DNA of 64,000 bases, from positions 7,629,241 through 7,693,240 of the forward strand of contig OZ316899.1 of the NCBI GenBank assembly GCA_973895155.1, written 5' to 3'. Both the position numbers and the translations under genes were made by a program. Every line of letters begins with the position of its first letter. The first letter of the stretch is position 1. Source of the DNA: Marsupella aquatica. Its lineage: Eukaryota; Plantae; Marchantiophyta. Positions 145 to 27,347 of the stretch are shown piece by piece. The notes under the pieces were generated by a model. That model had not been told where the DNA came from and did not search any database. It worked only from the letters and a program-made list of their open reading frames with translations.

Positions 145-463
145 GTGGAGAACAAATCCCCACCAGGGATAGTGCGATACCACCAAGATAGTCTAGCATG
201 GAAGCACATTGATGCCACTTGGCCGGATTTTGCCCAGGAGCCTAGGAATGTTTGTTTGGGGTTGGAAATTGATGGAGTGAACCCATATAAGCAACGACAG
301 AAACCTAAGTCCATCTGGCCTGTTCTTTTGATAAATCAGAACATCCCTCCATGGTTGGCAATGAAGAAGGGTCATGTGCTTTTATTAGCTATAATTCCAT
401 GACCCAAGGCCTGTAAGAATCCTGATATCTGTTTGGCTCCAGCTTATGAAGAGCTACATAATC
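145..463 (+). pseudogene. Fragment of a CACTA/En-Spm TnpD transposase (Transposase_21-like), interrupted by the CACTA end at 464
   Basis: DSLAWKHID..WPDFAQEPRNVCLGLEIDGVNP..SIWPVLLINQNIPPW..MKK motifs, homologous to the TnpD segment at 16108-16608; premature stop at 400-402. Confidence 0.85.
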
Positions 464-499
464 CACTACTACACTATCATCCATTTTTGCAAACCCAAA

Positions 500-1030
500 A
501 ATATCGCAACTAACAAAGAACTCTACATCAAGAATTCTACGTGTTGCGATTAAATGCGCATCGCAACACCTTCGCCACTTGCAAACCTAAATGCTTCGCA
601 ATTGGACCATCGCAACACCATCGCAACGACTTCGCAATTACCCAACCACATAGCCTCGCAATTTGCCGTACCTGTGTGATGTTTTGTGTATCGCATGCAG
701 TTCGCAAAGCCCCACACCAACGCCGCTGCGGTTGTTCAAATTTGCGAATGCTTTTGCTTCACAGATGGTTTGCGGTATTAGTTGACTCAGAATCTGAGAT
801 ACTTTTAGGTTCATAAGTTGCCGTTGCATTTGTATCGCAGATACTGGAGTGTTTTGCTTCAAATAGAATGAATCAATTGCGTTCGCAATTAGCAAAGAGA
901 GAAGAATGGGATAGTTATGAACTAGATTGAATGTAAAAGTGTGATGCAATGTTGCTCACAGGTTGCAAGGTAAATGAGCTGGTTAGTTTTGAAGTTTAGG
1001 AATTCTCAACCGGTTCGCAATTGTTTGAAA
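500..1030. repeat. CACTA subterminal repeat region (TCGCAA/TTGCGA in both orientations)
   Basis: Many direct and inverted copies immediately inside the CACTA terminus; the motif recurs at 1910-2090 and 3440-3650. Confidence 0.75.
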
Positions 1031-1261
1031 GCACAAGCTTCAATAAACATTTTGCAAGGTATTCCTCTTGGGTATGGACCCAATGTATTGGAAGGCAAAA
1101 TTGGTGTTTATAAGATGAGAAATAGGTGCATGTACAAAATGTAGGAGTTCAAGGAACCCTATTCATAAGAAGGGTGGCATATGTGATGCCAAGTGGACCC
1201 TACTAACCATATCCTACCTCTTCCTATCCTAAGCTCTTACATGGCTAGTCACTCAAACTTA

Positions 1262-3293: not shown

Positions 3294-3659
3294 AGCCTTC
3301 CACCTCTCAAGTCTCTTTCTTCTCCTTGCGCGCAGCTACACTACCCTCTCGCCTTCTCCGCTCGTTCTCTCGACAAAACATAGGAATGAGCTCAACGCGA
3401 GCTCCCACCGACACTTACGGCATTCAAAAAAAAGGGTGTTGCGATCAGATTCGCATGGGAAACTCCCATCCTATACGCTTCGCAAACCATTTCGCAAATT
3501 GCGACCTTGTTGTGAAGGTTTAGTCATCGCAAGGCAATTGCAACCTGCAGAAGGGACCAAAATTTGCTCTTGGCCTCTATTTTTGCGAAGTTGTTGCAAA
3601 GCGTAGAGGTTTGCAAAAATTCTCTCTAAGTTGTGAACTAATTTGCGAGGCAGGTGATA

Positions 3660-4235: not shown

Positions 4236-4464
4236 ATGCTTTCATTTTTCCATTAACATAAAGGGTTGGAACACTCTAGGACTACTTGCACGACACTTCC
4301 GCATCTTTTTCAAAGTTTTGGCTAATGCATATGCATTGCGAGAGCCCGGGCATCTGAAAGGTACAACTTGTTTTAAAGCCTTTTGGTTTATATTGGAACT
4401 ATTGAGGGTTATAGTCTATCATCCCTTTCTCTACTTGATCATGAGTCATGGCTTATAATGTATT

Positions 4465-4595
4465 TGTTCAACATCACAATAATGTAAACACTTTATTCAT
4501 CTCCATCTATATACATAGTAGGTTGCTAAGGGAGTTGGTTGTGTAACCGCCTTAGTCCTAACCTTTGAGTAGACCTAACCTAAGGGATTATAACA
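4465..4595 (-). repeat. 3' LTR of copia-1 (131 bp)
   Basis: Direct repeat of 13746-13876; adjacent PPT at 4596-4606. Confidence 0.95.
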
Positions 4596-5157
4596 CTCCC
4601 CCTTGGATGCATTGTTTGTTGTGGTAAACATGCAGACATTGAAGGTCTAACGTTGATAGGAAACTTAAGTGTTTCCTATGTTTGGTGATTGTTTGTGACG
4701 CCGCCGGTACGGTGAGTAATGAGTAATTCGGTCTAAACCGTGCCTAGCACGCGCGTTAGGGGTATCTTAGGCCGCTATGATTAGCATAACGACAGTATTT
4801 AGGTAGCCATTATGAGTAGGAAATCATTAGTCAATAAGGGGAATTCATGTTCGGGCTGGCGGCGCGTCGCCATTCGCACGCCCGGGTTACGAGCGTGGAG
4901 GGGCCCCTCCCTCTGGTCCGTATAACAAACTTCGGGAGGCGTCCACTGACACGCGGTGACTCAGACCGGCGGAGTGGCCGGTACACTACAAACATGAACG
5001 GTTCAGCCTATAGGCAACGAGGAGATGTCGGGGGATCGACAAGCCCTCAAGGTAAAAGGGAGCCGACCCTTTGGAGTGCACCAGTCCATCAGTCCACGCG
5101 CCAGCTTTGACCCCAGCTCTCTCGTTCGCTCTAAGTCGCCACTACTATCTCCTCTGA

Positions 5158-5919
5158 ATGTCACACACGATCCTCTCCAGTTCGGCCATTCAATTCTGGA
5201 CGCAGTTCCTATCTACCGGAAGACACTTGGCCGACTCATTGAAACATGCCAACCCACGCCGATACGAAATCGAACGCGAGTATGAGAGAGCCATCCGCCT
5301 AGCAGGACGACACCACTACATCCTTAAATTTGACTACCCGTCTCAGAGCGAGCTTTACCGACCAGCAGAGGTATCTGGGTACTTCTTCAACGAAGACAAA
5401 TATATTGGTTTCTGGGAAGCATTGCTTCGGCTTCCGGACGAGATCTTCAATATCCCGGGTACGATCGACTTGCAACGACATCACTTTGACCACATCCCTG
5501 CTCAGGTTCGGGCTATCATCAACAGCGAGTCCAGCACTACCCGTTCGACAAGGTCGTCTACACTTGCTTCGGAGAACTTCTACCAGCACCTGCAGAGCTT
5601 CATGGGAACTAGATCCGCAACCACCGGTGCCAGCCCAGTGGACCCATACCCGTACCCGTACCAACGCAGACTCAGGCTCAGGCTCAGCTTTAGGCTCAGC
5701 TTCAGTCTCAGCCTCAACCTAGCCAACCCCCACCACCGATCGCCCCGCCAACAGTACAAGTACGCTCCGTCATCAACGCTGTGGACCTTAGTGATGACGA
5801 CGAGGCTACCCCACCCTTGCTCAGGCGGCCCAGAGGAGCAAACACTCAAGGGGCCGACACTACATCATCCCCTCCCCATGCTCGGACCCAAGGAGTGGCT
5901 CCAGCAGACAACACGGTGA
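5158..5919 (+). pseudogene. N-terminal part of the LTR-A protein, frameshifted relative to 5781-7814
   Basis: In copy 2 the same peptide (RLPDE..ENFYQHLQSFMG) is in one frame with the downstream ORF (49983-51338). Confidence 0.7.
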
Positions 5920-7814
5920 CCGTGGCCGCCCCGGGACCAATACTAACGGCGGTAGCACTACCTATGCCCGATCGAGAGGATGGGGAGGTGTCACCTTCCC
6001 CGAGCCAGTCACGGGGGAAGAAGAGGAAGGAACCCGCCACTGCATCTGGGTTACCATTGGCCACGGTAGCCGTGGTCGAGGTGACAATGCACCGCATGGG
6101 GGAAAACGTGCATAAGAACATCCTCCATCCCAAGCATGCGGTGTACCTGAAGACTCAGGGATTCGAGCACCTTGCCGCTCTGCCCTGGAACACTTGCAGG
6201 TACTACGGGGAGGACATGACAGAATTGGTCAAGAATTATGATGACGCACGTCAGCATACTCAGCTACGGGGAAGGAATATGTCCCTCACGGAAGAACGGC
6301 TCAAGATGATCTTCAGATTACCCGAAGGTGACCATCGAGTCAAATCATGGGCTCCCGTGGGCAAGGGAGCCAAGTACCAATCCTCAAGTTTTCCCTCAAA
6401 AGGAGCAGTGGACAACGGGTTCGTGATGAGGACCTGCCTCATCCTCGAGATAGCTGAGCGACTGGAGTTCCAAAGGTACGCCCTCCACATGATGGAGCCC
6501 CGGGGGGAGATCTCCGCCGCCCAGGTTATCCAGGTCGAGAACTATCGACCTAGGAAGTGGGCATCGTACTTCGCTAAGAAATTCCATGAAGAGATGGAGC
6601 GGCGAAGGAAGACGCTGTACATTGGCAGGAAGGCGTATTTCGCTAGCCACATTGAGATCATTCTTGAGTGGTACGCTCGGTTTGATCGACGAACCCTTCC
6701 CCGTGTCAACGTTACAAAGCTGGTCCCAGCTAGGTGGGTTTTTCCGGCCTTGGAGAGACGGCCCCAACTCGAGGCCCGAAGTCCAGCGGACACGCAAGCT
6801 TCACCCACCCCACCTCCACAAGTAGCTGTAGTCATAACCGAGGAGGTACCGGATGGGTCGGTTATTGCAACCGTTGATGCGATCCAACAGGCCGGGCTAA
6901 GTACAGAAGTCGGTACAACGGAGGTCTTACTCGAGCCCGGGTCTCCAAAAGACCCACCGATGGCTATTCCGGAGAACCGGACATTGCTGCAGGAGGACAC
7001 TCCAGCCCCTTCCAACATTACGTCCCCAGGGCTGGATGTTACTGCCCCGGCCCCCGCTCGTGTTGACGTCTGCCCGTGCCCAACTCCGGACAGGCACAAC
7101 CTGGACCACCCGGAACTCTTCGTACCGGGTACATTTCTGAACGGGCTTCTGGGAGATTTCTCTCATCAAATTGCCCGGGATACCATGGAGTTCATGGCCC
7201 GGAAGGTAGCCTGTTTCTTCAATCAGGAGTTAGTTGCTGCAGTAAAGGCAGGTCGGGCCCAGTCAGAGGCCCTTCAGAGGATAGAGCGGTACCGGGTGGA
7301 GTCCGTATACTTAAAGAACAAAGTTGCGGCTCAAGAGGCTGAGCTTCTGCAACTACGACCCAAAGTTGCAGCCGCCGATGATTTGTTAGCAAAGGCGCAC
7401 GCCCTTACCGCCCTAGCCGAGCAGGCCAAAGCTGGGAATGAGGCCGAGATTGCACGACTCCGGAACCAGATTGACAGTTTGAAGAATCAAACTGTCATCT
7501 GGCAGAAGGACCTGGAGGAGGCCAAAGAACGGGCCCAACGGGACACTGCGGAGATAGCCACGCTACAGGCCGAAGTGGCACGGCTCCAAACCAAAGCCGA
7601 GAAGCAGGACCAGCTGGCGGGCAAGCTGACGAGCGACGCCCAGCAGCTGGAGGAGGCATGCCAGGAGGCAGCGGAGGAGACGGACGCGGCGAAGCGAGAG
7701 AACGAATCTTTGCTGGACCAGGTCCAGCTCCTCAAGGCAGACAACGACAGACTTCGTAAGCAACGGGATGGCCGCTTCCACTCGGGCGGCTCTGGCAAGC
7801 GTGCCAGGCATTAA
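5781..7814 (+). CDS. LTR-A-encoded protein: PMD/Athila-ORF-like plant transposon domain plus C-terminal coiled coil
   Basis: 677-aa ORF; GFEHLAALPW..ELVKNY..LRGRNMSLTEERLKMIFRLPEG pattern; heptad-rich last ~170 aa; basic NLS-like RGKKRK. Confidence 0.75.
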   Translation: MDLSDDDEATPPLLRRPRGANTQGADTTSSPPHARTQGVAPADNTVTVAAPGPILTAVALPMPDREDGEVSPSPSQSRGKKRKEPATASGLPLATVAVVEVTMHRMGENVHKNILHPKHAVYLKTQGFEHLAALPWNTCRYYGEDMTELVKNYDDARQHTQLRGRNMSLTEERLKMIFRLPEGDHRVKSWAPVGKGAKYQSSSFPSKGAVDNGFVMRTCLILEIAERLEFQRYALHMMEPRGEISAAQVIQVENYRPRKWASYFAKKFHEEMERRRKTLYIGRKAYFASHIEIILEWYARFDRRTLPRVNVTKLVPARWVFPALERRPQLEARSPADTQASPTPPPQVAVVITEEVPDGSVIATVDAIQQAGLSTEVGTTEVLLEPGSPKDPPMAIPENRTLLQEDTPAPSNITSPGLDVTAPAPARVDVCPCPTPDRHNLDHPELFVPGTFLNGLLGDFSHQIARDTMEFMARKVACFFNQELVAAVKAGRAQSEALQRIERYRVESVYLKNKVAAQEAELLQLRPKVAAADDLLAKAHALTALAEQAKAGNEAEIARLRNQIDSLKNQTVIWQKDLEEAKERAQRDTAEIATLQAEVARLQTKAEKQDQLAGKLTSDAQQLEEACQEAAEETDAAKRENESLLDQVQLLKADNDRLRKQRDGRFHSGGSGKRARH

Positions 7815-8030
7815 TGGCGGAGTAGGAATAGAATAGGGTTAGGAGTAGCTAAGTCAGGCTATTGGGACAGGCACCTGCCTTAGTTACAGCAGCACTGCCA
7901 TGCTGTCCAGCCTGCGTAGATTAGGATCTTCTAATAAGACACAGCCATTTTTTGGCCTGACAGTCAGATTAGTTAGGACCTAAGTCAGCGAATCTTCGGG
8001 CGGGAGGACACTCCGTTCCCCGGCCCTTAG

Positions 8031-8075
8031 TATTTAGTGCACCCCTCGGTAGAGGCAAGGGGGGGTTTTAGTCTC
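8031..8075 (+). promoter_or_regulatory. Putative LTR-A core promoter (TATA-like TATTTAG plus CGGTAGAGGCAAGGGGGGG)
   Basis: The same motif follows TATATAG in the different LTR at 63931-63967. Confidence 0.45.
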
Positions 8076-8875
8076 AGAGTTGGACATCCGTGGTATGCGC
8101 GGGGAGTCCCGACCTCTGGGAGTGAAAGAGTACCAAGGGGAGGGGGTAGGACTAAGCTCGCCAGGTGAGTGCGGAGCCGAACTCCATTGTAGTATACTCT
8201 CTTGGCCTTGAACCTGTTCATTTTGGAGCTGTTGGGTCAACCAAGTGTACGCACATGTCCCCTATGTAGTAAAATCCTTTCCCATTATTTCCTTCGTGTA
8301 AATTGAGATTGTATGCTTGTACGCGTGTATGTGTGTGTGAATCTCGTGTATAGGTGGCAACGCCGGGCCGAACGCACTACCCAAGTCGTGCACGGGGTGC
8401 AGCTTGCGGGTATGTGGTTGCGAGCACGGGTTGAGGACCTGTATCATTGAATCCGGATCGAAGGCAGACAACACGAAGGCTTAGAAGTCCTTAAGCCGGG
8501 GTCGATCCTGTTATCGACTAAGGTACGTTCCGGCGGCAGAACATAAACCATACCTAGGAGATGTCCGTATCTAACAGTAGGCGCACTTAGTGCTAGTTTA
8601 CGTGAATTAGGTGCATTACGCGCTTCCCTCCCTGCCCGAACCCTCATATTTACGAAGGAGGTGCCCGTTTAAAGCTGAAGCCCGAGTTAAGGCCAAGGCT
8701 GATGATGTGACATTGTTGAAGTGATTGTCTAGTAGGGTGATATAAATTAGGGTGTAACCTCATTAAAACCCCCCTCCTTTCTTGTGGGGAAAAAAGAGTG
8801 TTACCACCCTGTCCTTATATGTCCTGGAATCAGCGTTTATAGAGTAATTGGGTGTTAATCATGTCTGGGTTAATG

Positions 8876-11800
8876 TTATAAGTCGTAGGTGGTCGGTAAT
8901 GTAACTGGAGGTAGGGACTTGGTGAATAGGTCTGCGCTGTTCTCAGGGCCGGGGATCCATTTCACATCAATTGTATTGCCCAGTTGTTCGTGTGCAAAAA
9001 AGAACTTAGGAGCTATGTGCTTCGTCTTATCTCTTTTAATGAATCCGGCTAATATTTGTTCTACGCATGGTCGATTATCTTCATAGATTATCGTAGGCAA
9101 ATTGAGTTTAGGCATACCTATGGTCTCTTGAATGTAATCAATGACGTTTCGTAACCAGATACATTCCCTGCTTGCTTCATAAAGGGCAATAATCTCTGAG
9201 TGGTTCGAAGAGGTAGTAGTCAGAGTTTGTTTCGTGTTGCGCCAAGAGATTGCTGTGGGTCCGATGCGGAAGATATATCCGGTCTGTGATTTGGCATCTG
9301 CCGGGTCAGACAGATAGCCCGCGTCTGCATATCCTGTGAGTGTTAGGTCCATGGTGGTGGGATAAAATAATCCGAGGTCGATTGTCCCACTCAGGTAGCG
9401 CAGTATTTGTTTGAGTCCGTTCCAGTGCCTAATCGTAGGCTACGAGCTATGGCGGGACAGCAGGTTGACAGCAAAAGCGATATCTGGGCGAGTCTGGGAA
9501 GCTAAGAAAAGTAGTGCCCCTATAATGGACAAGTATGGTTTTTCGGGACCAAGAAGTGGCTCCTGTTCGGTTCTTTTCCGAAAGATGTCTTTCTCTTTAT
9601 CCAGTGAACGTAGGTCCATTGGTGATTTCATTGATTTTACTGTATGCATGTTGAATTGTTTCAGCATCCTGCGGGTATAAGTTGATTGGTGGAGGAATAC
9701 TCCACTCATAAGGTGTTCGAACTGCAGTCCGAGGCAGAATGCAGTTCTGCCTAGATCTCTGGTTTCAAATACCCTATTCAGCTGTTTAATTGTGTCATGT
9801 AGGATCTTTTCTGTGCCAAATAGGTTTAGATCGTCCACGTAGATGGCCACAATGATTATTTCATGTCCTTCATGTTTAATGAATAGGCACGGGGTGATGT
9901 CTGATGTCTTGAAACCCATGGCCAACATCTCATGTTTGAAATGTTTATACCAGGTGCGTCCACTCTGCTTCAAGCCATACATGGATCGGAGGACCTGGAC
10001 AGCAAAACGAGTTCTTGCATGAAGTGCTTTCTCGTTCAGTTTGGGCTTAGTAGACGCTCGCCATCCTATTGCTTTTGCAGTGTTGTATAACAATGTTTTG
10101 TTTGTGTGGCCAAAAGGGCCTTCGCTCATAGTGTTTGTGTCTGGATGCCCCTTCTCCCCCTCAATGTGGTAGTTTACTCTGGTTATAAGTTCAGGAGGGG
10201 CTTCCATATAGATTGTAGTATCAAGGTGACCGTATAGGTAAGCGGTCACTATGTCCAGTTGATGCATTATAAATTAATGGTGTATGGCGAATGCTATTAG
10301 GTATGTGTACGTTATCACGTCCATGACCGGTGAGTAAGTTTGGTCATAGTCTCTGCCTGGGAGTTGTGTGAATCCTCTGGCTACTAATCTGGCTTTGTAT
10401 CTCACAATCGCTCCCTCGGCATTCCTCTTTTTGATGAATGTCCATTTGTAGCCCGTGAGGTGAACTTTCGGTGGAGCTGGTTTAATCGGGCCGAACACTT
10501 GCTGTGAGATCAAGGAGTCGAGTTCAGAGTTGATTGCACTTTGCCATTCTGGCCAGTCTTTTTGCTGGCATGCTTCATTGATGGTCATGGGATCAGGTAA
10601 GTCCGCTATTATCGCTTGTGAGATTTGGTATGCAAATATGCTATCCAATAATACTTTAGATCTGTCCCAGATGTTGCCAATGTGATTATAGTTAATTGCT
10701 ATCTCTTCGTTTTTTGTTGGTGTAGGTATAGCAAGTACCGTGGGTGCTGATGTCGCTTGTGTATTTTGCAGGACCCTTCTCTGGCGTGGTTGTTTGTCTC
10801 CAGCTCCTATGGGTTGTCCTCTCTTCTTCCTCGGTTCAGCAGTCATAGCAGCTTGTCGTTCCATTTTGATTCTGGAGGGGGCATTGGTAGCAAGTACGTG
10901 GGACCTGGTGATCTGTGCTACATCAGCAAACGCATCAGGTAATTGTTCCATGATTCTAGTGAGGTGGAGTATTCGCTGGACCTCAGTATCGATTTGTGCA
11001 GTTCTTGGGTCGTTCCAGAATTGCGAATTAATTTGCCATGCTAGGTCTTTAGTTGAGGCGTTAGTCTTATTCTCTCATGTACTCAAGCTTGGGAATGTAT
11101 CCTCATAAAAGTTGCAGTCCACAAATCTTGCTTTGTATACATCTGCGGTGGTAGGTTCCAAGTATCGTATGATTGATGCTGAGTCGTATCCAATGTAAAT
11201 TCCCTTTTGTCTTTGAGGTCCTAGCTTGGTCCGCTTGGGTCCCATTATCGGGACCAGAACCTGGCATCCGAATGTTCGGAGGTGTGCCAGGTTTGGCGTG
11301 GTACCAAATGCTAGTTTGTGTGGGGAGCTCGAGTTGAAGGCCGATAGGTGATATCTTAGTAATGCTGCTGCATGTAGGATGGCATGGCCCCAGGCTGTTG
11401 ATGGTAAATTTTTCTGCATCAGTAGTGGTCTCGCTATAGATTGCAGCCATTCAATCAAGGATTCAGCTATTCCATTTTGAAAATGGACATAGGCGACTGG
11501 GTATTCCACCTCTATGCCCGTTGCTACGCAGAAGTCATCGAATGTCTTTGATGTAAATTCTCCCGCATTGTCCACTCTGATTATTTTGATGGGATGGTCA
11601 GGGAACTGGGATTTCAGACGTAGGATATGTGCTAATAGGCGTGGGAAGACCAAGTTTCGTGTGGAGAGGAGGGAAACCTGGGACCACTTGGATGATGCGT
11701 CAATTGTTGCAAGGAAGAATCGGAAGGGGCCACTGGGGGGGTCTACAGGGCCACAGACGTCCGCATGGATTCGCTCAAGAAATTGGGGTATGCGCTTGTC

Positions 11801-13363
11801 AGTTGTGGAGGGTGATGGTCGGAGTGTAAGTTTGCCTTGTGAGCAGGATAAACAGGGGGATTTCAATGAAGTGGCGTGCACCGTATGTGGAATACCCTGT
11901 GTATCTTTAATAATTTTGTGGAAAGTCTGTGTGCCAGGGTGACCCAATCGGCGGTGCGATATCTTAGTGAGGGTCTGTCGGGGGCTATCTATGTAGAAGG
12001 TATGTATTCTGACAGCATAAAATCCCAGTGGGAAAGCTATGAGGGTTTCTTTGATCTCCATGCCCCGTGAGGTTTGGGCTAGAATGTGTAGCACCTCTTG
12101 AGTTTCGTATATGCTGGTGTGAATGTGCAGGCCAGTCTCACAAATGTCCTTGAAACTCAGGAGATTTCGTGTGGCCCTCGGGGCGTAAATGGCCGTCTTG
12201 ATATGGATAATTGTGCCTTTGGGTAGCATTCGCCTCTTCCAACTGGTGGTGTCCCATGATTGTTGTCACTCTTCTTTGGGATGGGATTATGTATTTAGAG
12301 TAAGCTTTGGTCCTTAAGATCGAGTGAGAGGTTCCACTATCTAGTATGCAGCAGTTTGGGTTGTCCAAAGCTTTAGACATCTCGGATTGAAAAGCAAGGT
12401 GCAATTCAGGTAATATTTCTGGGGTTTCTAAAAATGCTCCATGTGTTTCATATGCTAAGCTGTTTTGATCTTTCTGGTATAATGCAACGAGGTGTGCTGG
12501 GGCTCGACATGCTTTCTTAATATGTCCTTTAGTCCCACATCTGTGACAAGTTTGCGGGTTCTCGGACTTATCTGGATTGTAGTTGTTGCGAGTCCAGGTA
12601 TTCCAAAATCTGCCTGGTTGTGATCTCCCTCGGCCTCTTCCTCCCCAATATGAGCTTCTTCCTCCACGTTGGAAGGAGTTGCCACGTCCACGGTAGGTTT
12701 GTCGTCCTCTATTGTTCCCTCTCCCTCCAAATGAATTGTTAGATCCACGTCTTGATGTGTTGAAATGGGTTTCAGGATTCGCTTGTGGAGGTAGAGTGCC
12801 GGGTGGTTGTTGCTTTGTATTTTGCAGCAGCAAGATCTGATATTTTTCTGCTAACAACATATGCGCGATTAACTCTGAATATGTTGTGAATCTCATATTC
12901 TGGTATTGTGTGGATATTACCAGGTTCGTTGAGTGAAAAGTCGAAAGGGTCTTCTCAATTTGTTCTTCTTCATTAACCGGGTGGCCGTAGATTGCCAATT
13001 GCGAAATGATGCGAAACAATTTGCTGTTGTATTCTGCAATCATCTTGTAATCCTGTACATGTAGGTTAATCCAATCGTGCCGCGCTGCAATGAGGAAGAT
13101 AGTGCGAGTGTGGTCAAATTTGGCGTGGAGATCATCCCAAAGTACTCTAGGATTATATGCATTCATATATTGGCATTTCAAGGAATCGGCAAGATGATGG
13201 CGAATCAGGATTAGAGCCTTTGCCTTCTCTTGTAGCGTGGGGCCATTGTTCGTCAAAATTGTATCCTCTAGGTTCTTAGATGCAAGGTGGGCCTTGACAT
13301 CTAGTGTCCAAGACAAGAAATTAGAGCCATCAATGCATAGTGCTTGGAAGTAAAGTTCTCCAT
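8876..13363 (-). pseudogene. copia-1 gag-pol polyprotein, broken by stops and frameshifts
   Basis: Zinc knuckle CHRCGTKGHIKKAC; PR LDSGTSHS; INT HRRLGHPG and DNAGEF; RT YKARLVARGF and YVDD; RH YADAGYLSD and YEDN. Confidence 0.93.
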
Positions 13364-13732
13364 GGTGTTAGTAGTCATTGTGCCCGAATATAGATTTACG
13401 TTGGGGAGTAGGCCTTCACCGCTCAGTTATGTCTTGTGATGTTTAACTATTGGCAGTTCCTCTGCCTGTAATCAATGTGGGGAATTTTTCTCGGAGATTT
13501 TTAAAAGATCAATGTAGGATTGCAACAATGGAATGATGCAAGAATTGATGAGGATTGATTATACCCAAATTCGCCTTTTGTCTTGACAAATCTGGTGTAG
13601 AATTACTGTCTATGGTTGGTAATGGGGTTCACAGACCTCTGGCTGAGATCTCCACTGATCCGCTTACACCCATCCAAAATCAAAGCTCTCCCGAATCAAT
13701 GTCGCCCTTAGGAAAAAATTGATGAGCACCTT

Positions 13733-13745
13733 TGTGCTGATAACG
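13733..13745 (-). promoter_or_regulatory. PBS of copia-1 (CGTTATCAGCACA; Bianca-type, internal tRNA-Met priming)
   Basis: Abuts the 5' LTR; near-identical CGGTATCAGCACA in copia-2 at 27148-27160. Confidence 0.7.
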
Positions 13746-13876
13746 TGTTCAACATCACAATAATGTAAACACTTTATTCATCTCCATCTATATACATAGT
13801 AGGTTGCTAAGGGAGTTGGTTGTGTAACCGCCTTAGTCCTAACCTTTGAGTAGACCTAACCTAAGGGGTTATAACA
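13746..13876 (-). repeat. 5' LTR of copia-1 (131 bp)
   Basis: Direct repeat of 4465-4595. Confidence 0.95.
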
Positions 13877-14085
13877 GTATTATATATTTGCAGATTTTTC
13901 CCTCCTACTTCCAGATTGGGTTCATCAAGTTTGAGCCTGAAGACCTATAGGCATTGCTGAGCCCGGGTCTCAAAAATGGTAATATTCATTTCACTTCAGT
14001 TTAAAGTGTACTTAGGGTTTAAAAAGGATGGTTTTGGGAATTTTTTTACTAACTCCAGACTCCAAACATTTGTTGCATTTGCCAG

Positions 14086-14319
14086 ATGTCTTCATCCTCT
14101 ACAACTTCCACCACATCGGACTCCTCCTCCGATGAAGACATTCCTCCTCCTCCTGAGCCTGAACCAAGTGTACGTCAACTTAGTGGTCCACCACGTCAAC
14201 TTTGTGGTTGTAAAAAATGTGTGGGGATGATTGTCCGAAAGTCATATGTATGTGCGGACCACATTGTAAGATATGGACAACATCGAGGTCTTACACCGGG
14301 AGCCTCTTCATCCCATATG
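14086..14319 (+). CDS. Exon encoding the CACTA transposase-associated zinc-binding domain
   Basis: CGCKKC-x10-CADHIVRYG resembles the CPCxxC..HL..G motif; preceded by CAG; phase-0 donor GTGAGT at 14320. Confidence 0.7.
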
Positions 14320-14426
14320 GTGAGTTGTAAAGTTACCTTGTTTGTTTCTATGTTATAAATCTACCTAGCATGACTTAGGTTTTGGGAAGTTGTTCACATT
14401 TACTTTGTTGGATTTTTTTCATATAG

Positions 14427-15242
14427 GTATCCACTAGGCCTACACCCACGGCACCAACACCCTATGTTCCCTCACAAGGAGTTCTAGATGCTATAGGATT
14501 GGCCCTTTCACAAGCTTTTCGTCTAGTTGCAACAGGGCAAGGAAGTGTTGGGACAGCTGAGGGTGTTGGTATTGTTACAAGAGGGAAAAAATGATCTAAA
14601 AGGAAGCCGAGAGGGGAAGTTGATCAGTATACCTATAGGGTTGATGGTAGGTGGGGACCTTGTACCTTCACAGGGAAATGTGTGCCTATCATAGAGGATT
14701 GGAATCCTGATTGCCTTGGTTTGCCATGTGATATAACCTATGGTGAGGAGATAGAGGTTTGGGGAAGGCATTGGGTTGTCAAAAGTTCTACACTAGGGGA
14801 GAGACATGGGTATGGATTTTTTTCTTGTGAGGACATCATTGTGGATGATATGGGTGGAAAAGGGCGGTCTCCAGATGGACCAACGTTGTTCCCATATGGT
14901 GGACCCATTTACAAGAGGAGACATTGGAACATGATCCTTGTACAACACCCTAAGTGGAAGACTTATGCATTGGACATGGATACTTTTGATGGTTGCACTA
15001 GAAAGTATAGTGAACAACGTATAATTGATGGAGATCCCATCCGTAGTGGGAATATAGCCGGTTTCATAAACAGTACTGTGGGGTCCCGGCCCAAGCGTAG
15101 GCAAAATTGTGAGTGGGTTTTTGTTGATGGTCCCCCTCCAGCACCATATGGACAGAGATATCATCATGACCATTGTCTGGTTGTGGCTACAAGGACCATT
15201 AAGGCCGGAGAGGAGTTGTTTACTCATTATGAGTGGGATTAG
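14427..15242 (+). CDS. SET-domain protein (putative lysine methyltransferase) exon; one in-frame TGA at 14592; open SET core 14682-15242
   Basis: VKSS..HGYGFF, YGG, IDG..SGNIAGFINS and LVVATRTIKAGEELFTHY are SET motifs in the expected order. Confidence 0.85.
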
Positions 15243-15400
15243 GCTTAGTTATTTTAGGAACACTCATGTATTACATATTCATTCATTGCGTGTGAACATA
15301 TTTTTGTAAGCTACCCATGTCCTTTTCATATTATTAATAACATATTTGTCTCACTATTATTTGGAGTTTGATTGCAAATGCTTTATTGTGTTGTCCATAG

Positions 15401-18400
15401 AATGTGCGACCTAGTCAAGATATGTTGTCAAGGAGGTTGAGAGCTACATATGATGAATGGGCATGCCACAAGACGGAGAAACATCATCAATAGATTCCTC
15501 ATCCAGTGACAATGACATTGAAGGTTCGGATGAAGGGGCACCTAGGATAGATTATGAGGTCATGCAGGACCAGGAGACAGCCATGGATGACTTCATGATA
15601 GATTGGTTTGGTGTGGACGTTGATGGTGAAGGACGTGGACCACCCAATGAAGGAGCTCCCCCACCAAATGCTGCACATGACCCCCGGCCTCAACATACAC
15701 CAGAAGGTCAACAACAATGGGAAGAAGCGGAGGCACATGCTAGAACACCTATTTATGGGGGTGCTTGCTTGAATAGACTCTCTGCCATCTTGGCATTGAT
15801 GAACCTTCAGGCAAAACACAAGGCAAGCAATGCCCTACTATCAGATTTGTTTGCAATTTGTCATGACCTCATGTTACCCAGTGACAATGTATTGCCAGGA
15901 ACTTGGAAGGAGGCAAAGAGAGTTTTATCATCCATTGGTATGGAATATCATATCATTCATGCTTGTGTGAATGACTGCATCCTATATCATGAGACCAATG
16001 CCAACAGGACTGAGTGTCCAATTTGTCATGAGCCTCGATATGAGGCCAACATGTTGACCTCAAAGGTGCCCAGGAAAGCTGCCCGTTGGTTTCCCATTAT
16101 TCCTTGATTGTTGCACATGTATCGATGTTTTGACTTGGCAGAATTGATGGTATGGCATAAGACACATCAATCAGAGGCTGGTGTCATGCGGTTGCCAGTT
16201 GACTCCCCTGCTCACAAGCATGTGGAGTCACAATGGCCAGAGTTTGCCAATGACCCTCGTCATGTGAGGTTGGGGTTGGCATCAGATTGGGTCAGCCCCC
16301 ATTCCCTTGGTGGGAAAGGATGCCCTACATCAGTTTGGCCGGTGGCTGTTATGAATTACAACCTTCCACCATGGTTGTCCATGAAAAAGGGCTTCTTATT
16401 GTTGTCATTGATTATCCCAGGTCCATCTAAGGTAAAAAACATGGACACCTACTTGGCACTATTGGTTGGGGAACTTCAAAAATTATGGGACGGTGTGTGG
16501 ACCTATGATGGTCGGAAAACTACAGGGGGATTATCGCGTGTCTTCAAATTAAAGGGAATCAATATGTGGACCATGCATGACTATCCTGGTAAGGTTTTCA
16601 TGTATTAAAGAGTTTGTTTTAGAGGAAGTCCCTCATATTTATGTATGTACATGAACTTTTTAAATCCTTTGACTCTAATTGAGAAAGTGGTTTGGGTTTG
16701 GGTTTGTTTCAGGGTTACAAAATCAAGGGTATAAGGCATGCTCCACTTGTGGTCCAAGCCTTGAAGATATGGCCAAGCACTCAAGATGGCTTCTTATGAT
16801 AATCTACCTTGGGCATATCAAGTTTCTTCCACTTGGACATGAGATGAGGTCTGACCCCCTTCTATTTTCAGACTTTGACATGATCAATGGTGATGAGCGT
16901 GACATACCTGAGCGTACATCCTTTGCACATTGGAAATCCATAGCTGATAGGGTGGCAGACCCTGATGACCCCATGACATTTGATGGAAGTGGGTTGACAC
17001 GGTGGACTATACTAGCCACTTTGCCGTATTGGCCTGAGTTGAAGATTCATCACTTGTTAGACCCCATGCATATAGAGGGAAACGTTGGGAAGGCTTTGAT
17101 TAAGCATTTTTATGGAGAAAAGGACCATAATTTTAGGGAGGCATGCCAAGATCTAGAACGACATCCAGATTTATGGATAACAGTTGATGAATCAATAGGG
17201 ATGGAACACCGTCCTTCAGCTCCTTGGGTTTTGAGTGTTGGTGAAAGAAGAGAGTTTCGACAACGCATAGGTCAGATGCGGTTTCCTACAGGCTATGGTG
17301 CCAATCTCTGGAAAACTTTTGGGATGGAGGACAGTCATAAGTGGCCAATGTATCTGAAGACACATGACTATCACCGTTTACTACAACATATACTTCCTGT
17401 GGCAATTATAGGCTTGGGCAGTGAAGAAGTGCAAGATGCCCTCTGGTCATTGGGCACTTTGTTGAGATGGATATGCTCAAAGGAAAGTATGAAGAAGAGA
17501 TCCCACGTATGGAGGTATTGGTAGCTGAGGTAGTTTGCAAGTTAGAGAAGGCCCTCCCTCCTTCCTTCTTTGATTGTCAAGTGCATTTACTTGTTCATCT
17601 TGTGAGGGAGGTTGCCATTGCTGGTCCAGTGCATTGTCGTTGGATGTATTGGTTGGAAAGGTACATGGCTGTGTTAAAGGCTTATGTACCGGAATCGTGC
17701 ACGAGTGGAGGAGAGCATGGCAACAGGATACTTGGCAGCTGAGAGTATGTTCTATTGCAGCAACATCTTAGCTACCATTGATCCTAGTTGTCCATGCAGT
17801 TGGATGGAAGAGAGAGAAATGGAGGAGGATTGTTTAATAGGAGCCAAAAAAACACGCTTACTGACAGGAGTTGAGTTGACACAGATGACTACTTTCATGT
17901 TGAGTAATAGCACTATTATGGAAGAATGGAGAGAGTTTTATGAGGATGCAAAGAGGGAGAGTCGTCGCCCAAGGATTTTTCCAAAGTTCCTTGAGTATAC
18001 GAGGGAGAAAGTACTTCAGTTGGATGCTATGGTGGCCCAAGGTGAGAGTGTATCACATTTTCCAGATATGACTCATGACGTTCGAACAATTGTTCATGGC
18101 CCTTTGAGACTTGTTCAGACCAGAACAGCAATGTGGACACAAGGGAGACATTTCAGGATTTCTGACCTTGATGAGAAGAGGGGTAGAACTTTTGACTGTG
18201 GAGTTCAAGGGCAGTTCATGCAGGATTCACAAAGTAGCCGCCATGACACCAATGTCATCCGAGATGTGGTGCCTCACTATGGGAAGATAGAGGAGATCTT
18301 GATTGTATCCTATGATGCGGATACAAAATTTGAAGAGTATGTCTTCAAATGTAAGTGGTTCAAAATTCACTTGGTTGGTGAGAATCGCACGGTACTTCTT

Positions 18401-18643
18401 GATGATTGTGGGTTTACTCGACTGAAGACATCAGCAACGAGCTTTCAACCATCTCATTGGCAAACATCTGAACCGTTTACATTCCCAAGTCACCTTGAGC
18501 AGTGTTTCTATATTCCATACCCACCAGACCCAGAGGAGTGGTCAGTTGTTATATCGTATGTGCCACGATCTCGTTCCATTATCTCAGAAAAACCTGAAGT
18601 TATTATTGTGTCAAACAGAGGAGAGGATGAGGACCAAGTTTGA
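15401..18643 (+). pseudogene. CACTA TnpD DDE transposase (Transposase_21 plus DUF4218/DUF4216-like C-terminus), decayed; intron from about 16589
   Basis: IHACVNDCILY, ECPIC, LASD, MHDYPG, LDPMH, LKTHDYH, HLLVHL, WMYWLERYM, FKCKWF and EPF motifs; stop at 16105 and frameshifts near 15455, 17490 and 17690. Confidence 0.95.
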
Positions 18644-19199: not shown

Positions 19200-19584
19200 T
19201 CCTCATTCAAGACATCCAGACCAATGTACTTGACGTCTAACATGGCTTGGTTCATCTGAAATGTCCTATAGAACAACGTCACGTTGTTTACGACTCCTTC
19301 TACAACGTAAATATTAACGATGTGACACCCTACACACATTACGTCCTCTCCTACGTTGTTAATAACAAACGACTTTCAAAACAATGTTCAAGATAGCTCA
19401 TCCAATGACGTTATGTTTAACAGTGTTTCAAACGACTTAAGTTGGAGCAATTGGCTCTTAGATTTCTACGACATCTTAGTTACGTCAAACGTAGTTGTAA
19501 ACGTAGTCATGATAGTCGTTAATGATGTTGACGATGATTATTAGGAGGTATTGTTAGCATCCGACGCAACAAAATCTAGTAGTG
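19200..19584. mobile_element. Right terminus of a CACTA element (…TAGTAGTG) with AACGAC/ACGT subterminal repeats
   Basis: Ends TAGTAGTG at 19584, where unrelated coding sequence starts abruptly; repeats differ from those at the left end. Confidence 0.7.
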
Positions 19585-20941
19585 ACAAGGAATGTCGTTA
19601 TGCTTCCTTTAGATTGTCTGGGAGTAACTAGAGTGGTTACTTTCAAAGCAATGCTAACTTTCATGGATTCGAGCATAAATTTGTTATGCAAACTGGGGTA
19701 TTTTGTTTGCTTGGCGTCATTCCAAATCCGCTCATTGAGGTTTTTGTGGACTTCATAGATTGGTATTTGCTAGCATTCCAGAGTAAACAACATTTTGAGA
19801 GGTCCTTGAATCAAATGGATCAGTTAATGAAAAAAGCAGTAGGATTGATGATAAAACATGCTAAAACTTGGCAGAAGTCAAGACAGTTTCAACATTGTAA
19901 AAGTCCATGCCATGAGTCACCTAAAAGATTGTATCAAATGATGTGGGTTGCCTTTAGAATATGACAAAGGTATATTCAAACATCTTCACATTGCCCTCAT
20001 GAAGGTTCCATACAGACATAGCAACAAGAGGAATTTCATGGGGCAAATAGCAAGGCATAGCCAGAGGACTAGAATTTTACTAGACGAAGCGAGCTGTCAA
20101 GAAGACTTAAGAGTGCACGCAGAAGATGTTACTGCACTAGACTAGGTACTATTTCCCTTACCTCCCTCCCACTTCTGCTACACTTTCAGTTTGTACTTTC
20201 AGTGTAGCAACACATGTCACTTTACAAAGGATGTCTTGTAGGCACTTATGCATGTGCTTTATGATTTGATATGTGGAGGCTGTATTGACAGGACAAATCA
20301 CCCTATCTGGAAAGGATATAAGGGTGACATTGAGTTGGCTTGATGCAAGTAACAATGACTTTGTGCCTGTAGAAGTGAGTGAACTATTTCAGTGTCAACC
20401 AGAAATACAACTGCACCTCAGAGAAGCCTTTGTTATGCACTTGAATGATGAGAACTGTGCAGTTCCTGAGATAATACAACTTTGGAAAATCTTAGCAGTG
20501 CCTGCTGGGGAAGGCGTTCGATTTGGAGAATGGCCAATGTACACCCATGCCTGCAGAAGTTTCCATGGTAAAGAATGGTTTGGATTCGTCTCTCTTCAAA
20601 TGGAAGAAGTTGGCATTGATCCTGTAACATCTTATGGTCAACTAAGGTTGCTGATTTCTTGTGAAGTCATTGATGAGGGTGGCAAGAAGATCATGAAGCA
20701 TCTAGCATTTGTTAGAATGATGGAAAAGCTGCCAAGGGATGGAGATTGGAAGTTATTGCACTGCACAAAACTCCAGTGGGTTGATGAAGGCATGACAGCC
20801 TCTACAAGAAGAAAAGCACTTTACAGAAGATCCAAAGTGCCTTATATTGTTGTGGAGGTAGCAAACATTGCTAAAGTGATTCATTGTGTCCCTAATTTTG
20901 CTCAAGTTGGCACATATTTTGAAAACAGATTCAAACTTTAA
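19585..20941 (+). pseudogene. C-terminal part of a Plavaka-like (CMC superfamily) transposase
   Basis: Across a frameshift: F-IVKVHAMSH..I..G..EYD..FKHLHIALMKVPYRHSNKRNFMGQI; then SFHGKEWFGFV..YGQLRLL..HLAFVR. Confidence 0.6.
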
Positions 20942-21788: not shown

Positions 21789-21975
21789 TGTTAAATTATG
21801 AAATATATATACACCAACAAAAGATGATTGAAATTTCTCTGAAGCCAATGTGGCTTATTATATGTTGTACATTGGGGTAGTTGTAACTACCCTCTCCTAG
21901 TCTCGTGTCTCTTTATATCTAGGTATTGCATACCTCTTTGTATCATATGTACTAAGGGTTAAATATATTCTAACA
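21789..21975 (-). repeat. 3' LTR of copia-2 (187 bp)
   Basis: Direct repeat of 27161-27347. Confidence 0.95.
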
Positions 21976-22339
21976 CTCCCCCTTGGTTACTTTATGTTTC
22001 TTAAAGTAGCCATTTTGGAAATAAATTTAAGCCTAGTTCTGAATATAATGGAAAAACTCATTGGGGTATGACCTCATTAAAAACCCCCTGATTTCTTTTG
22101 GGGTAAAATGAGTGTCACTACCTTACATGTAATGAGTTAAAACTAGTAAGAAAGGAGTGTAATCATGTATGGCTAAATTTAAACGAGTGTTTGATAGGAT
22201 GTGTCGAAATGTTCGAGTATGGAGAACATACGTTCAGTAGAATATGCATAGAACAGAGGAAGTATCATGGGGAAACATAATGTTGTCGAGTCGCAATGGA
22301 ATAAGAAGTTTATGGAAGAGGTGGGGAAGTCAGATTGCA

Positions 22340-25300
22340 GTGAAGTCCGATAATCTACGGAGTCCTATTCCAGTCGAATGCGCTTCGTGGAGAATGCGAG
22401 GTAAGGGCTTCGTAAAAAGGTCAGCGCGATTATCTTTAGAAGGTATCCATTGAACATTGATTTGATCCCCGTGCTGTTCATGCGTGTGGAAAAATTTGGG
22501 GGCAATATGTTTGATTCGGTCGCCCTTGATGAAGCCCTTAACTATCTGGTCAACACAAGGCTTGTTATCCTCGTAGATGATAGTAGGCTTGGTAAGAATT
22601 GCATGGCCTGTAGACGATTGGATGTGATTGATAAGTTGTCAAAGCCACAGGCATTCTCGGCTGGCTTCGTATAGTGCTATGATTTCCGCATGGTTGGAGG
22701 ATGTGGTCGTCAAAGTTTGCTTGGTACTTTTCCAGGATATGGCTGTATGTCCTTGTAGAAATACATATCCCGTCTGGGATTTCGCATCATCGGGGTCCGT
22801 AAGGTAACCTGCATCTGCGTAACCAATCAATTCGTTAGGTACATCTTTAGGGTAATAGAGGCCAGTATCGATTGTACCTTGAAGGTAGCGCAATATCCTC
22901 TTAATGCCATTCCAATGTCTAATAGTCGGTTGGGAGCTATGGCGAGCAAGCAAGTGGACAGCGAAAGAGATGTCTGGGCGGGTTTGATTCGCCAGGTACA
23001 TCAAGGCTCCTATAGCAGAGAGGTAAGGTTTCTCTGGGCCCAAGATTGGTTCGTGTTCGGTCCTGCGCTTATACATATCTCTGGATGTGTCTGAAGATCG
23101 AATTTCCATAGGTGTCGTGACTGGATAGCTTTTGTCCATGTTGAATTGTTTTAATAGTTTTCTGGTATATGTAGATTGATGAATAAGAATACCGTTGGAT
23201 AAATGTTCGAATTGAATGCCAATACAAAATAGGGGTTGACCAATATCCTTCATTTCAAATATGCTCTTAAGTGTGGTAATGGTTTGATCCATAATGAGTT
23301 TAGTACCCATTAGGTTAATGTCGTCGACATATATGGCTATGATTATAAATTCAGTGCCATGTCTTTTGATAAAAAGGCAAGGGGCAATGTCCTCATTCAC
23401 AAAACCAAGTGCAAGCATCTCTGCACGGAAATGTTTATACCAGATGCGGCCACTGTGCTTTAAACCATAGAGTGACCTAAGAACCTGTACAGCAAATGCT
23501 TTCTCTGGTTTCTTGGCTTTATTGATTCTGTGGTGAACAGGATTTACCTCAGCGAGTAAGTCAGTATAATTCAATGGTAAATCCACTGACTGTTCACCAT
23601 TAGCAATTTGCTGGGCCTTTTTATTTTGGACCGTTGATGAGTCATGTATTTCAGCAGGTATCATCTGGCCTGAGTGAATGAGATGGTCTTGAAAGTCCTG
23701 TGTAGGGACAATCTTATCAATACCCGACTTTAGGTCCGGGGTTGGGGAGGTTGTATGCTCCCCCTTAATGTGGAAAATTACCCTCTGAATTAATTCAGGT
23801 GGAGCTTGCATTTGTATGTCAGTATCAAGTATACCGTAAAGGTAAACAGTTACCACGTCCATAAGATGCATACGAATTTGATGTGTGAGGGCAAAAGCAA
23901 TCAGATATCGGTAGGTAATGGAGTCCATGACCGGTGAATGAGTAAGGTCGTAATCTTTGCCATATATTTGTGTGTAGCCTCTAGCCACAAGTCTGGCTTT
24001 GTAGCGGATTACTTTACCTGCAGCATTATGTTTGCGTATCAATATAATCCTATACCCAGTTAGGTGTTGTGCAGCAGGGACGATTCAGAGTTCTCCAAAA
24101 ACTTGGCGAGATATCAGAGAATCAAGCTCAGAGTTAATAGCAGAGTTCCATTTGGGCCAGTCTGGTCGTTGTTGTGCTTCTTTAATTGTCCGAGGTTCTG
24201 GTAAATCTTTAGTTATATCCTGGGATATAAGAAAAGCAAAATGCTCATCTGGTTCAGTTAAATTTCGATGCCATAAATGTCCAGTATGCATATAGTGGAT
24301 GGATATTTCTTCATTGTCATCCTGTATAATTGGTGGTAATTGTAAGGATAAATGTGTTGATACAGGTGTCTTCTGTCGTGGTCTAGAGTCTTTGGAACCT
24401 GAAGGTCTGCCTCGTTTAGCCTTGGGAGCGAGGTCTGTGGCTCGTGTATCTGGTATATGAATTCTCGCAGGAGTATTGGCTGCATCTATATGTGATTTCG
24501 TTACATTTGTAGCATCATTAAATGCGTCAGGTATTTTCTCCATAATTTGATGGAGATTCAGAATGCGTTTCACTTCATCGTTTGTCAATTGAGTACGAGG
24601 ATCATTCAAGAATGGATCCTTTGTTGTCCATTCTAATGTGTGTGTTGAGACAGGCTGTTTGGAGAGTTGTGCTAGAGTTAGAAGTGTTGGGAAGATGTCT
24701 TCACAGAATTTATAGTCCTGGTATCAAGCTCGAAACACATCAGCAGTGGTGGGTTCGAGATACCTTATTATCGAGGGAGAGTCGTAGCCAACATAGATGC
24801 CACGTCGACGCTGTGGTCCCATCTTGGTGTGCTTGGGGCCAAGAATGGGTACTAGAACAAGGCAGCCAAACACTTTCAGGTGTGTAATATCTGGTATAGA
24901 GCCATATGCTAGTTGGTGTGGTGTGTAAATATTAAAAGCCGATGGTCTATATCGCAGTAGTGCAGCGCCATGGAGTATAGCATGTCCCTAGGCTGTAAGT
25001 GGGAGTTGTGTCTGTAATAGCATAGGTCTTGAGATCATCTGTAAACGTTTTATTAATGCCTCTGCAGTACCATTCTGGAAATGTACATATGGTACTGAGT
25101 ATTGGATTGTGATGCCCAGGACTTGACAGAAGTCATCGAATGTTGGTGATGTAAATTTGCCAGCATTATCAATTCGAATTATTTTGGTAGGAGAGTCAGG
25201 GAATTGAGTGCGAAGACGTATAAGCTGTGTTAGCAGTCTGGCAAAGACAAGGTTTATTGTGGAAATTAAAGAAACAGAGGACCATTTGGTGGAGGAGCAT

Positions 25301-26999
25301 ATCATTACTAGGAAAAACCTAAATGGTCCACTCAGTGGATCAATAGGTCCGCAGACGTCCACATTGATCTGTGAGAGGAAGTCAGGGATTTGATAGGTGT
25401 TCTTGGTGGAAGCTGGATGAGTGATAAATTTGCCTTGTGCACAGGGGATGCAAGTGTCTAACTTCGTGGATGGGTGTACTCCTTTTGGTATGCCAGTGGT
25501 GTTCTTCATAATTTTATGGTACATCCCTGGGCCTGGGTGGCCGAGGCGGATATGCCATAATTCTGTTGGGGATAATTGTTGTCGTTGGGAATTGTAAGAC
25601 ATGATCTTAGTGGCATAAACGCCAGGGGGATGGAGTGGTAATGTCTCTAGTGTGATGGGGCCATTATCAGTTTCTCGAAAAATCTGTAGAGAGTTTATGT
25701 GGTTGTCGGGTTCAGAGCGTATATGGAGATTGTTTTGACGAACATCATGGAAACTTAGTAAGTTCCGTGTCGCGAGTGGGGCATATATGGCAGATGAAAT
25801 TTTAATGGTTGTGCCTTGAGGAAGGGTAAGTTGGGCAGGTCCATGGCCTTCCTCTAATTGGTTTATACCTGTGATAGTAGTCACAAGTCTATTTGATGGG
25901 TATATGTGCTGGAAATAACATTTGTCTTTTAGGATTGAGTGAGAAGTGCCGTTGTCAAGAATGCAAATATCAGCACCCGCGAGAGATGTGTCATTTACTT
26001 CATGTGATATTATATGAACCTCTGGTGGGGGAGGTGTGAGCGTGTATTTGGAGAGATCGTCATCGATCTCCAAGTGATGTGCGGCAAGGTGTTGGATGTT
26101 GTGAGGGAGGCCTGGTATAGTTTGACTAGGTGAGCTTGAACTCTGCAATTCTTTTGGATATGCCCTGTCCCACCGCAACGGAAACACTTGGGCTGATTAT
26201 TTGTGGGATAACTCTGTGCAGGTTTATTTGGCATTTGATTGGGGTTACGATACCAAGAATTCATGGGGGGCTTGAAGTTTTTGCCTTTGTCTGTGCGAAA
26301 TTGTTGTCTCTTGTGGAATTTATTAAAACGACTTGGATTGCCTTTAAATTGGCCACGAGGTCGGTTGTAAGAGGAATTACCTCTATTGGTATTCGTGAAT
26401 TGTATTTCCGGTTTAGGAAGCGTGCCTGGTGGTCGCTCGCGAGAGTTCTTCAAAAGGAGGAGGTCATTCTTTTCAGCCAGGAGCATGACTGCAATCAAAT
26501 CTGAGAATTGGGTGAAATGGCGTTGTCTATAAATCTGCGATAACTGCATGTTCGCTGCTGAGAATGTAGAAAGAGTCTTTTCGATCTTTGCTGCTTCATC
26601 AATTGGTTCGCCGCAGGCTGCTAGCTGAGCAGTTATCCGAAATAAGGCGCTATTGAATTTGGCAATTGTAGGGTAGTCTAGAACTCGTAAATGAATCCAT
26701 TCATTTCGTGCAGCTGGTAGGGAAATTAGACGCAGATGGTCAAACCTCAATTTGAGAGCGTCCCATAGGGCTTAGGGATTAAACTCTGTAAGGTATTCAA
26801 GTTGTAGTTCGGCAGCGAGGTGATGGCGAATGATATATAGTGCCTGAGCCTTTTGTTGTAATGTGCCATTGATATCTGCTAAGATAATGTCGCCGAGGCC
26901 TTTCATGTTGAGAACAATTTCTGTATTCTGTGCCCAAGATAAATAATTGTCGCCATCTGTTGCGAGCAATGGGAATTGGAGCTTCTCCAATGTTGTCAT
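22340..26999 (-). pseudogene. copia-2 gag-pol polyprotein, broken by stops and frameshifts
   Basis: CFRCGGTGHIQKNC, LDNGTSHS, WHIRLGHPG, YKARLVARGY, YVDD and YADAGY motifs. Confidence 0.93.
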
Positions 27000-27160
27000 A
27001 GTCGATGAAAATTTTGTGGTGTACTTGGCGAAAGAAAAGAAAATGTGTCTTGGGGAATTTCGTTCGATGCTTCGTTCACAAGAAAAATAGGAAAAAATTC
27101 ACAAGAGGCCTATGAGTAGCTCGAGAGTTGTTGGAGGAGCAAAATCATGTGCTGATACCG

Positions 27161-27347
27161 TGTTAAATTATGAAATATATATACACCAACAAAAGATGAT
27201 TGAAATTTCTCTTAAGCCAATGTGGCTTATTATATGTTGTACATTGGGGTAGTTGTAACTACCCTCTCCTAGTCTTGTGTCTCTTTATATCTAGGTATTG
27301 CATACCTCTTTGTATCATATGTACTAAGGGTTAAATATATTCTAACA
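27161..27347 (-). repeat. 5' LTR of copia-2 (187 bp)
   Basis: Direct repeat of 21789-21975. Confidence 0.95.

Follow-up and report, generated by a model that had tools for sequence, protein, structure and literature searches.

What is a SET domain doing inside the transposase gene of a DNA transposon? The question is raised by a CACTA element in the liverwort Marsupella aquatica, located in a stretch of 64,000 nucleotides (contig OZ316899.1, positions 7,629,241 to 7,693,240; hereafter the window), where a first-pass annotation had proposed that a SET exon lies in frame with the zinc-motif exon of the transposase, within the intron preceding the TnpD body. Our analysis leads us to read the locus, with a probability of roughly 70%, as a decayed copy of a bryophyte CACTA (En/Spm) element in which an extra terminal SET exon sits in a transposase intron and is most likely alternatively spliced from one donor. 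The window copy was compared with related loci, of which L001 comes from Calypogeia fissa and L002 from Sphagnum jensenii, while L004, L005, L008 and L009 are metagenome contigs. The gene itself is laid out as follows:

14086-14319, plus strand: exon 1, with its ATG at 14086 and 78 codons, common to both predicted isoforms.
14320-14426, plus strand: intron between exon 1 and the SET exon, 107 nt, with the donor at 14320 and the acceptor ATATAG at 14421-14426.
14427-15242, plus strand: SET exon, a variable linker followed by the SET core, with its own TAG at 15240-15242.
14634-15239, plus strand: modelled SET fold with its N-flank (AlphaFold2 pLDDT 92.4, pTM 0.87).
15243-15400, plus strand: spacer of 158 nt 3' of the SET stop, ending in the second acceptor AG at 15399-15400.
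15401-16602, plus strand: first exon of the TnpD body, with a conserved 19-codon lead-in, an acidic region and the N-terminal part of Transposase_21.
16706-18643, plus strand: other TnpD exons, with the C-terminal part of Transposase_21, DUF4218 and DUF4216, located by tblastn with pieces of L004 and L005.

The positions that the first-pass annotation had given for exon 1, its donor, both acceptors, the SET exon and the TGA were each verified in the sequence. Exon 1 encodes an acidic, serine-rich head followed by a CxCxxC...C..H zinc motif and terminates in phase 0 at the donor GTGAGT (14320); its match to Transpos_assoc is weak (E 0.007, profile positions 36-64) and falls under the Pfam cut-off. 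The open frame of the SET exon starts at 14427, immediately 3' of the in-frame TAG of the acceptor, and the TGA at 14592-14594 is the sole stop before the terminal TAG. Downstream of SET, Pfam recovers Transposase_21 (E 8e-39), DUF4218 and DUF4216, and the window transposase shares 71-78% identity with intact relatives. The 1-nt frameshift reported near 15455 is real: sister copies in four sequencing runs have an extra A after 15455, and once this base is restored the frame from 15401 continues into the transposase ORF, which matches the arrangement of the Calypogeia and Sphagnum loci. The earlier proposal that the TGA at 14592 is a decayed CGA is plausible, the aligned codon being CGT or AGA (Arg) in two relatives, but it is Ser, Gly or Val in others and belongs to a poorly conserved linker.

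The SET assignment, originally made without database searches, is recovered by profile search: Pfam SET (PF00856) matches the window copy at 14595-15239 with an E value of 5e-7 and 30.5-30.7 bits, against a cut-off of 22.4. Among family members, 60 of 81 match SET at E<=0.01 and no other Pfam family, and some relatives score just under the Pfam SET cut-off. The window exon has 45 close homologues, and the Atlas neighbours of the SET protein are SET without exception. The confident AlphaFold2 model was built with 81 diverse relatives, a model from 27 close sequences reaching a pLDDT of only 37. Searched with Foldseek, the confident model returned 313 chains at E<=1e-3, SET proteins throughout among the matches listed, with Legionella LegAS4 as the top match (E 2e-7, 24-28% identity). 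VIA-align superposed the model on EZH2, Set1/COMPASS, SET7/9, ASH1L, LegAS4 and SETD8 with Z of 11-12 and rmsd of 2.3-3.0 over 120-136 residues, scores that are tied across SET enzymes and therefore assign neither subfamily nor substrate. A narrow SET profile found no match among solved structures in the PDB even at E 10, and a broader one matched LegAS4 along its entire core (E 4e-5) but other SETs at the last motif only. Judged by sequence comparison, the SET family is isolated.

Residues conserved down to members at 25% identity coincide with the GxG, YxG, IN(S), N.EW and E-L-x-x-x-Y motifs. Throughout the family, Ser stands in place of the canonical His of the NHS motif, so that catalytic activity is not guaranteed, and the protein stops a few residues past the terminal Tyr, without a post-SET region. 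Both features would suit a domain kept as a non-catalytic module binding histone tails or other proteins, for example to tether the transposition complex. We consider such a role distinctly unlikely, however, because the GxG, YxG, Asn and terminal Tyr positions show little or no variation in the family, including its members at 25% identity, and because LegAS4, the closest solved relative, carries the same kind of His replacement. LegAS4 has been reported to be active as a histone methyltransferase. Taken together, model and motifs indicate that the exon encodes a SET-type lysine methyltransferase fold, whose activity is predicted.

The first-pass annotation had itself raised the possibility that SET was a neutral capture present only in this copy. 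SET followed by Transposase_21 in the same orientation was instead found in seven loci (the window, L001, L002, L004, L005, L008 and L009), with SET identity down to about 35-40% in L008 and L009, and gene models of Riccia sorocarpa likewise contain both domains. Four DNA-like runs show the family to be present in very many copies, with SET and the Tnp2 core covered by reads to the same depth. The SET core is under purifying selection (pairwise dN/dS 0.09-0.29, maximum likelihood omega 0.167), as is the Tnp2 core (pairwise dN/dS 0.08-0.14, maximum likelihood omega 0.122), and the linker ahead of SET is nearly free of constraint (dN/dS 0.3-1.2). For the five loci that they share, the trees built from SET and from Tnp2 are congruent. 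A profile search of 1.84 billion representatives returned just 113 clusters, and every cluster with a name came from Sphagnum, Calypogeia or Riccia, none being a close host paralogue of SET; there is accordingly no sign of a host gene that could have been the source of a recent capture. CACTA elements do capture host fragments, and the SET of the window copy is broken, as might be expected of a passive passenger of the Pack-CACTA style confined to this copy or to a young subfamily. Such an origin is nevertheless barely credible: an omega of 0.17 across lineages with dS around 1, linkage to the transposase in seven loci over a wide range of SET identity, equal read depth and the lack of a close host paralogue among those representatives all speak against it, and as far as the data go the selection and linkage results refute it. 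These comparisons indicate that the element family has SET as a constant component maintained by selection.

The dS values among lineages are about 1, near saturation, so that horizontal transfer between mosses and liverworts cannot be judged from them. Calypogeia seems to have at least two SET-CACTA lineages, one of which, represented by L004 and P0041-like sequences, clusters with Sphagnum copies and away from the other Calypogeia lineage in both the SET and the Tnp2 trees. This grouping would reflect either old lineage sorting or moss-liverwort transfer.

How the SET protein is made is the second part of the question, and the comparison of loci supports the claim that SET is in frame with the zinc-motif exon of the transposase, within the intron before TnpD. 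The phase-0 donor of exon 1, GT(A/G)AGT, is conserved in L001-L004; in L001-L003 the homologous intron measures 89-116 nt and has an ATAG|G acceptor, and L001 and L002 keep the context of the second acceptor, ATAG|AAT, with a spacer of 147-174 nt. Both acceptors match the phase of the exon 1 donor. Liverwort and moss copies have also retained the 19 codons that follow the second acceptor and precede the first ATG in the TnpD frame. In four of six copies no ATG precedes the conserved GRWG flank of SET, which can therefore be translated only from exon 1. Since the window exons were searched separately, the joined form is represented by public annotated proteins: the gene models P0001 and P0005 splice exon 1 to SET at the same junction, giving proteins of 351 aa in Calypogeia and 343 aa in Sphagnum, the latter including JGI models of S. 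fallax.

Alternatively, SET could be a separate gene lying within the transposase intron, equipped with a promoter and start codon of its own, and would then have only its location in common with the transposase. Many Sphagnum models are indeed 263 aa long and begin at an internal Met near the start of the SET exon, so that an independent start is possible there, and the junction of exon 1 with SET is known from genome-annotation models only, no assembled non-genomic contig spanning it in our searches of Logan, JGI and SRC. No RNA run was found to contain the stretch, and the four DNA-like runs show no spliced joint. Yet the SET exon of the window, L001, L003 and L004 has its first ATG within or past the conserved N-flank; in several lineages the SET frame begins precisely at a conserved AG acceptor whose phase matches the exon 1 donor; and even the distant Riccia models have a CxCxxC head ahead of SET. 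We therefore regard a nested gene as unlikely. A joint of 14336 with 14414 seen in DNA-like contigs was considered as a splice and rejected, as 82 other letters lie between the two sides and represent a divergent intron. Given the conserved exon structure, both acceptors and the lack of an ATG before the SET flank in liverwort-type copies, the best reading is that the first exon is common to the SET protein and the transposase.

A single long SET-transposase fusion protein, comparable to SETMAR, might be suggested by four predicted models from Sphagnum and Riccia (P0092, P0118, P0191 and P0270) that link part of SET to the Tnp2 body. These models truncate SET ahead of its last motifs, however, and look like prediction artefacts on decayed copies. 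The SET exon keeps its own stop, a few residues past the catalytic Tyr, in all seven copies examined, and the phase of the second acceptor fits exon 1 rather than the end of SET, all of which makes a fusion very improbable beside two proteins that share their first exon.

The remainder of the element and its surroundings comprise the following features:

79-462, plus strand: Transposase_21 fragment of another, older CACTA element, with Tnp2 homology ending right at the left terminus at 464.
464-471, plus strand: left terminus, CACTACTA..., an exact octamer.
504-3643: subterminal array of TCGCAA/TTGCGA/GCGAAC motifs, in blocks 504-2079 and 3439-3643.
2145-3293, minus strand: conserved upstream gene, function unassigned, in three ORF pieces, divergent from the SET/TnpD unit.
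4466-13876, minus strand: nested copia LTR retrotransposon, with 131-nt LTRs 99% identical (4466-4596 and 13746-13876) and gag, integrase and RT ORFs.
19577-19584, minus strand: candidate right terminus, ...TAGTAGTG, the only exact right-strand match in the plausible range.
21789-27347, minus strand: second copia, with 187-nt LTRs 99% identical and the target duplication GGTTA.

Of the features that mark a CACTA/En-Spm element, a Tnp2/TnpD-type transposase, CACTA...TAGTG termini and subterminal repeats are present. Searches for CACTA/TAGTG pairs in the window without its two copia elements, in L001 and in L002 came back empty, and the terminus was obtained by comparing two Sphagnum jensenii copies, whose homology ceases at ...GTAGTAGTG; a metagenome copy has the same end. 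At 464 the window reads CACTACTACA, whose first 10 nt are identical to the end at which the homology between Sphagnum copies breaks off. Homology to the older CACTA stops exactly there, so that the SET-bearing element inserted into the older one, whose remaining transposase was not found downstream in the window. Together with the motif array that starts at 504, these comparisons give the left end at 464 good support. The region 504-3643 holds 32 of the 63 matches to TCGCAA/TTGCGA/GCGAAC in the window, together with the inverted pairs I11 and I18, and TCGCAA-type motifs also occur near the Sphagnum termini.

The right terminus at 19584 is a weakly supported candidate. Its pairing with the left end is limited to 8 nt, the TCGCAA array is absent near it, the Tnp2 of the older neighbour does not pick up again beyond it, and no 3-bp target duplication was found, the flanks being ATC and ACA, with no TAGTG+ATC junction in the window; since the right end may have been lost or misplaced, the missing duplication says little about the family. 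Taking 464 and the candidate 19584 as ends, the element measures 9,705 bp without the copia insertion. Just inside the candidate right terminus, 19250-19584 holds a dense array of ACGAC/ACGT-type motifs, unlike the TCGCAA array on the left, at a read depth 10-100 times below that of the coding core. Beyond it, a 222-aa ORF at 20273-20941 (plus strand) has no Pfam match and no homology in the related loci, and a tandem array of 13/20/33-nt units (GGATAGCGGACAC-like) lies at 63012-63512.

The upstream gene has 41 homologues and belongs to no Pfam family; its counterparts in the Calypogeia and Sphagnum loci, which occupy the corresponding position upstream of SET, are 59-65% identical to it in amino acid sequence, and it may be a second, TnpA-like gene of the family. 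In the Sphagnum locus L002, the 12-mer TGTCACTACTAT occurs at 3956, 4142, 6486 and 7923, in both orientations, around this gene, so that the terminal motif is used internally too, and an inverted pair of it bounds a 2.3-kb segment containing the gene. A motif of 40-100 nt just 5' of exon 1 is repeated in the window (4307-4369 and 13887-13989) and occurs five times in the Calypogeia locus L001 (8916-10002), and Sphagnum copies vary in their count of ~0.7-kb repeats upstream of exon 1. The repeats 5' of exon 1 may be promoter-proximal.

The window copy is dead and can make neither protein. Besides the TGA at 14592 in the SET linker and the 1-nt deletion after 15455, its lesions include a TGA at 16105-16107, where relatives read CGA, CGC or CAA; paired frameshifts near 17486 and 17689, where the switch of frame is directly visible and sister copies have an additional T after 17486 and one base fewer at 17689; and the copia insertion. 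Relatives mostly carry Arg codons at the sites of the two premature TGA stops (14592 and 16105), and among the differences to sister copies transitions outnumber transversions by ~3:1, as would be expected if methylated CpG had been deaminated in a silenced element. The SET exon has four well-supported private differences, of which two are synonymous and two non-synonymous, a split that fits neutral decay after insertion. The nested copia, which is foreign to the family, splits the element between the upstream gene and exon 1 and is flanked by the target duplication GTATT at 4461-4465 and 13877-13881; both copia elements look like recent insertions. An element spanning both was considered and rejected, the copia at 21789-27347 lying outside.

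In an intact element, splicing of the donor at 14320 to the first acceptor (14426) would yield a protein of ~350 aa consisting of the zinc motif, the linker and SET with its own stop, and splicing of the same donor to the second acceptor (15400) would yield a canonical transposase with the Transpos_assoc-like motif, Transposase_21, DUF4218 and DUF4216. The shared head could bring the methyltransferase to whatever the transposase head targets, be it the element ends or a partner protein, where it would modify a lysine of a histone tail or of a transposition factor. Splicing, catalysis, substrate and the direction of the effect, activating or repressing, are the steps that we infer, along with the anti-silencing or self-regulatory role proposed in the first-pass annotation. 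From comparative sequence evidence, the family seems to produce a protein or chromatin modifier of its own. A more specific and tentative proposal, which we hold to be possible rather than probable, is that the shared zinc head targets the element-encoded methyltransferase to the element's own ends or transposition complex, where its mark would license transcription or transposition or shield the element from silencing, and that this arrangement has been kept in liverwort and Sphagnum CACTA elements since before the split of these lineages or by way of transfer. If this were true, CACTA elements would carry a self-targeted epigenetic writer.

Among known systems, the maize element En/Spm produces TnpA and TnpD by alternative splicing. 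The bryophyte element resembles it in having one transcription unit from which two proteins are predicted by alternative splicing, and in combining Transposase_21 with Transpos_assoc, DUF4218 and DUF4216. The two differ in that the second product here would be a SET protein rather than the DNA-binding TnpA and would share a coding first exon with the transposase, and in that the bryophyte element has a further conserved gene upstream on the opposite strand. SETMAR of primates also has a SET domain and a transposase in one locus, but it is a domesticated host gene, present in a single copy, that arose when a SET gene of the host captured a transposase, whereas here a mobile, high-copy element carries a SET exon with its own stop. 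The closest solved SET domains are those of the Legionella LegAS4/RomA-type effectors (PDB 5czy, 8sr6 and 8swi). LegAS4 and the SET exon have in common the YIN-x-S form of NHS as well as the N.E(W/F)VE motif, but LegAS4 is a secreted bacterial protein with ankyrin repeats, and an identity of 24-28% provides no evidence for direct descent either way.

Accessory SET genes have been described in HarbingerS, in Phytophthora MuDR, in Helitron captures and as PAG2 of the red-alga Plavaka elements, which belong to the CACTA superfamily; in PAG2, SET is fused to an N6-adenine DNA methylase domain (PMC12730594; bioRxiv 10.1101/2025.02.11.637652). With these the bryophyte family has in common a SET lysine-methyltransferase domain kept as an accessory function of a DNA transposon. 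In those elements, however, SET resides in separate accessory genes, while here it is an alternative exon inside a land-plant Tnp2-type CACTA transposase gene. VANC of VANDAL (MuDR) is cited as an element-encoded factor proposed to act on the chromatin state of the element itself (PMC12730594). The SET protein would be alike in being encoded by the element and in its proposed action on the element's own chromatin; VANC is not a SET-type enzyme, and its anti-silencing role has been shown experimentally, whereas that of the SET protein is a proposal.

Our literature search found no paper on a SET exon in CACTA elements of bryophytes or other land plants. Accessory SET genes were already known, and what appears to be new here, no report of it having come to our notice, is a SET exon in a land-plant CACTA element that would share the N-terminal module of the transposase. 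Transposons with their own chromatin or protein modifiers are rare, and they reveal how mobile DNA copes with host silencing. Intact, annotated copies are present in the sequenced genomes of Sphagnum and Calypogeia, so that the substrate of SET, and whether it serves to counter silencing, are questions that can be tested directly.
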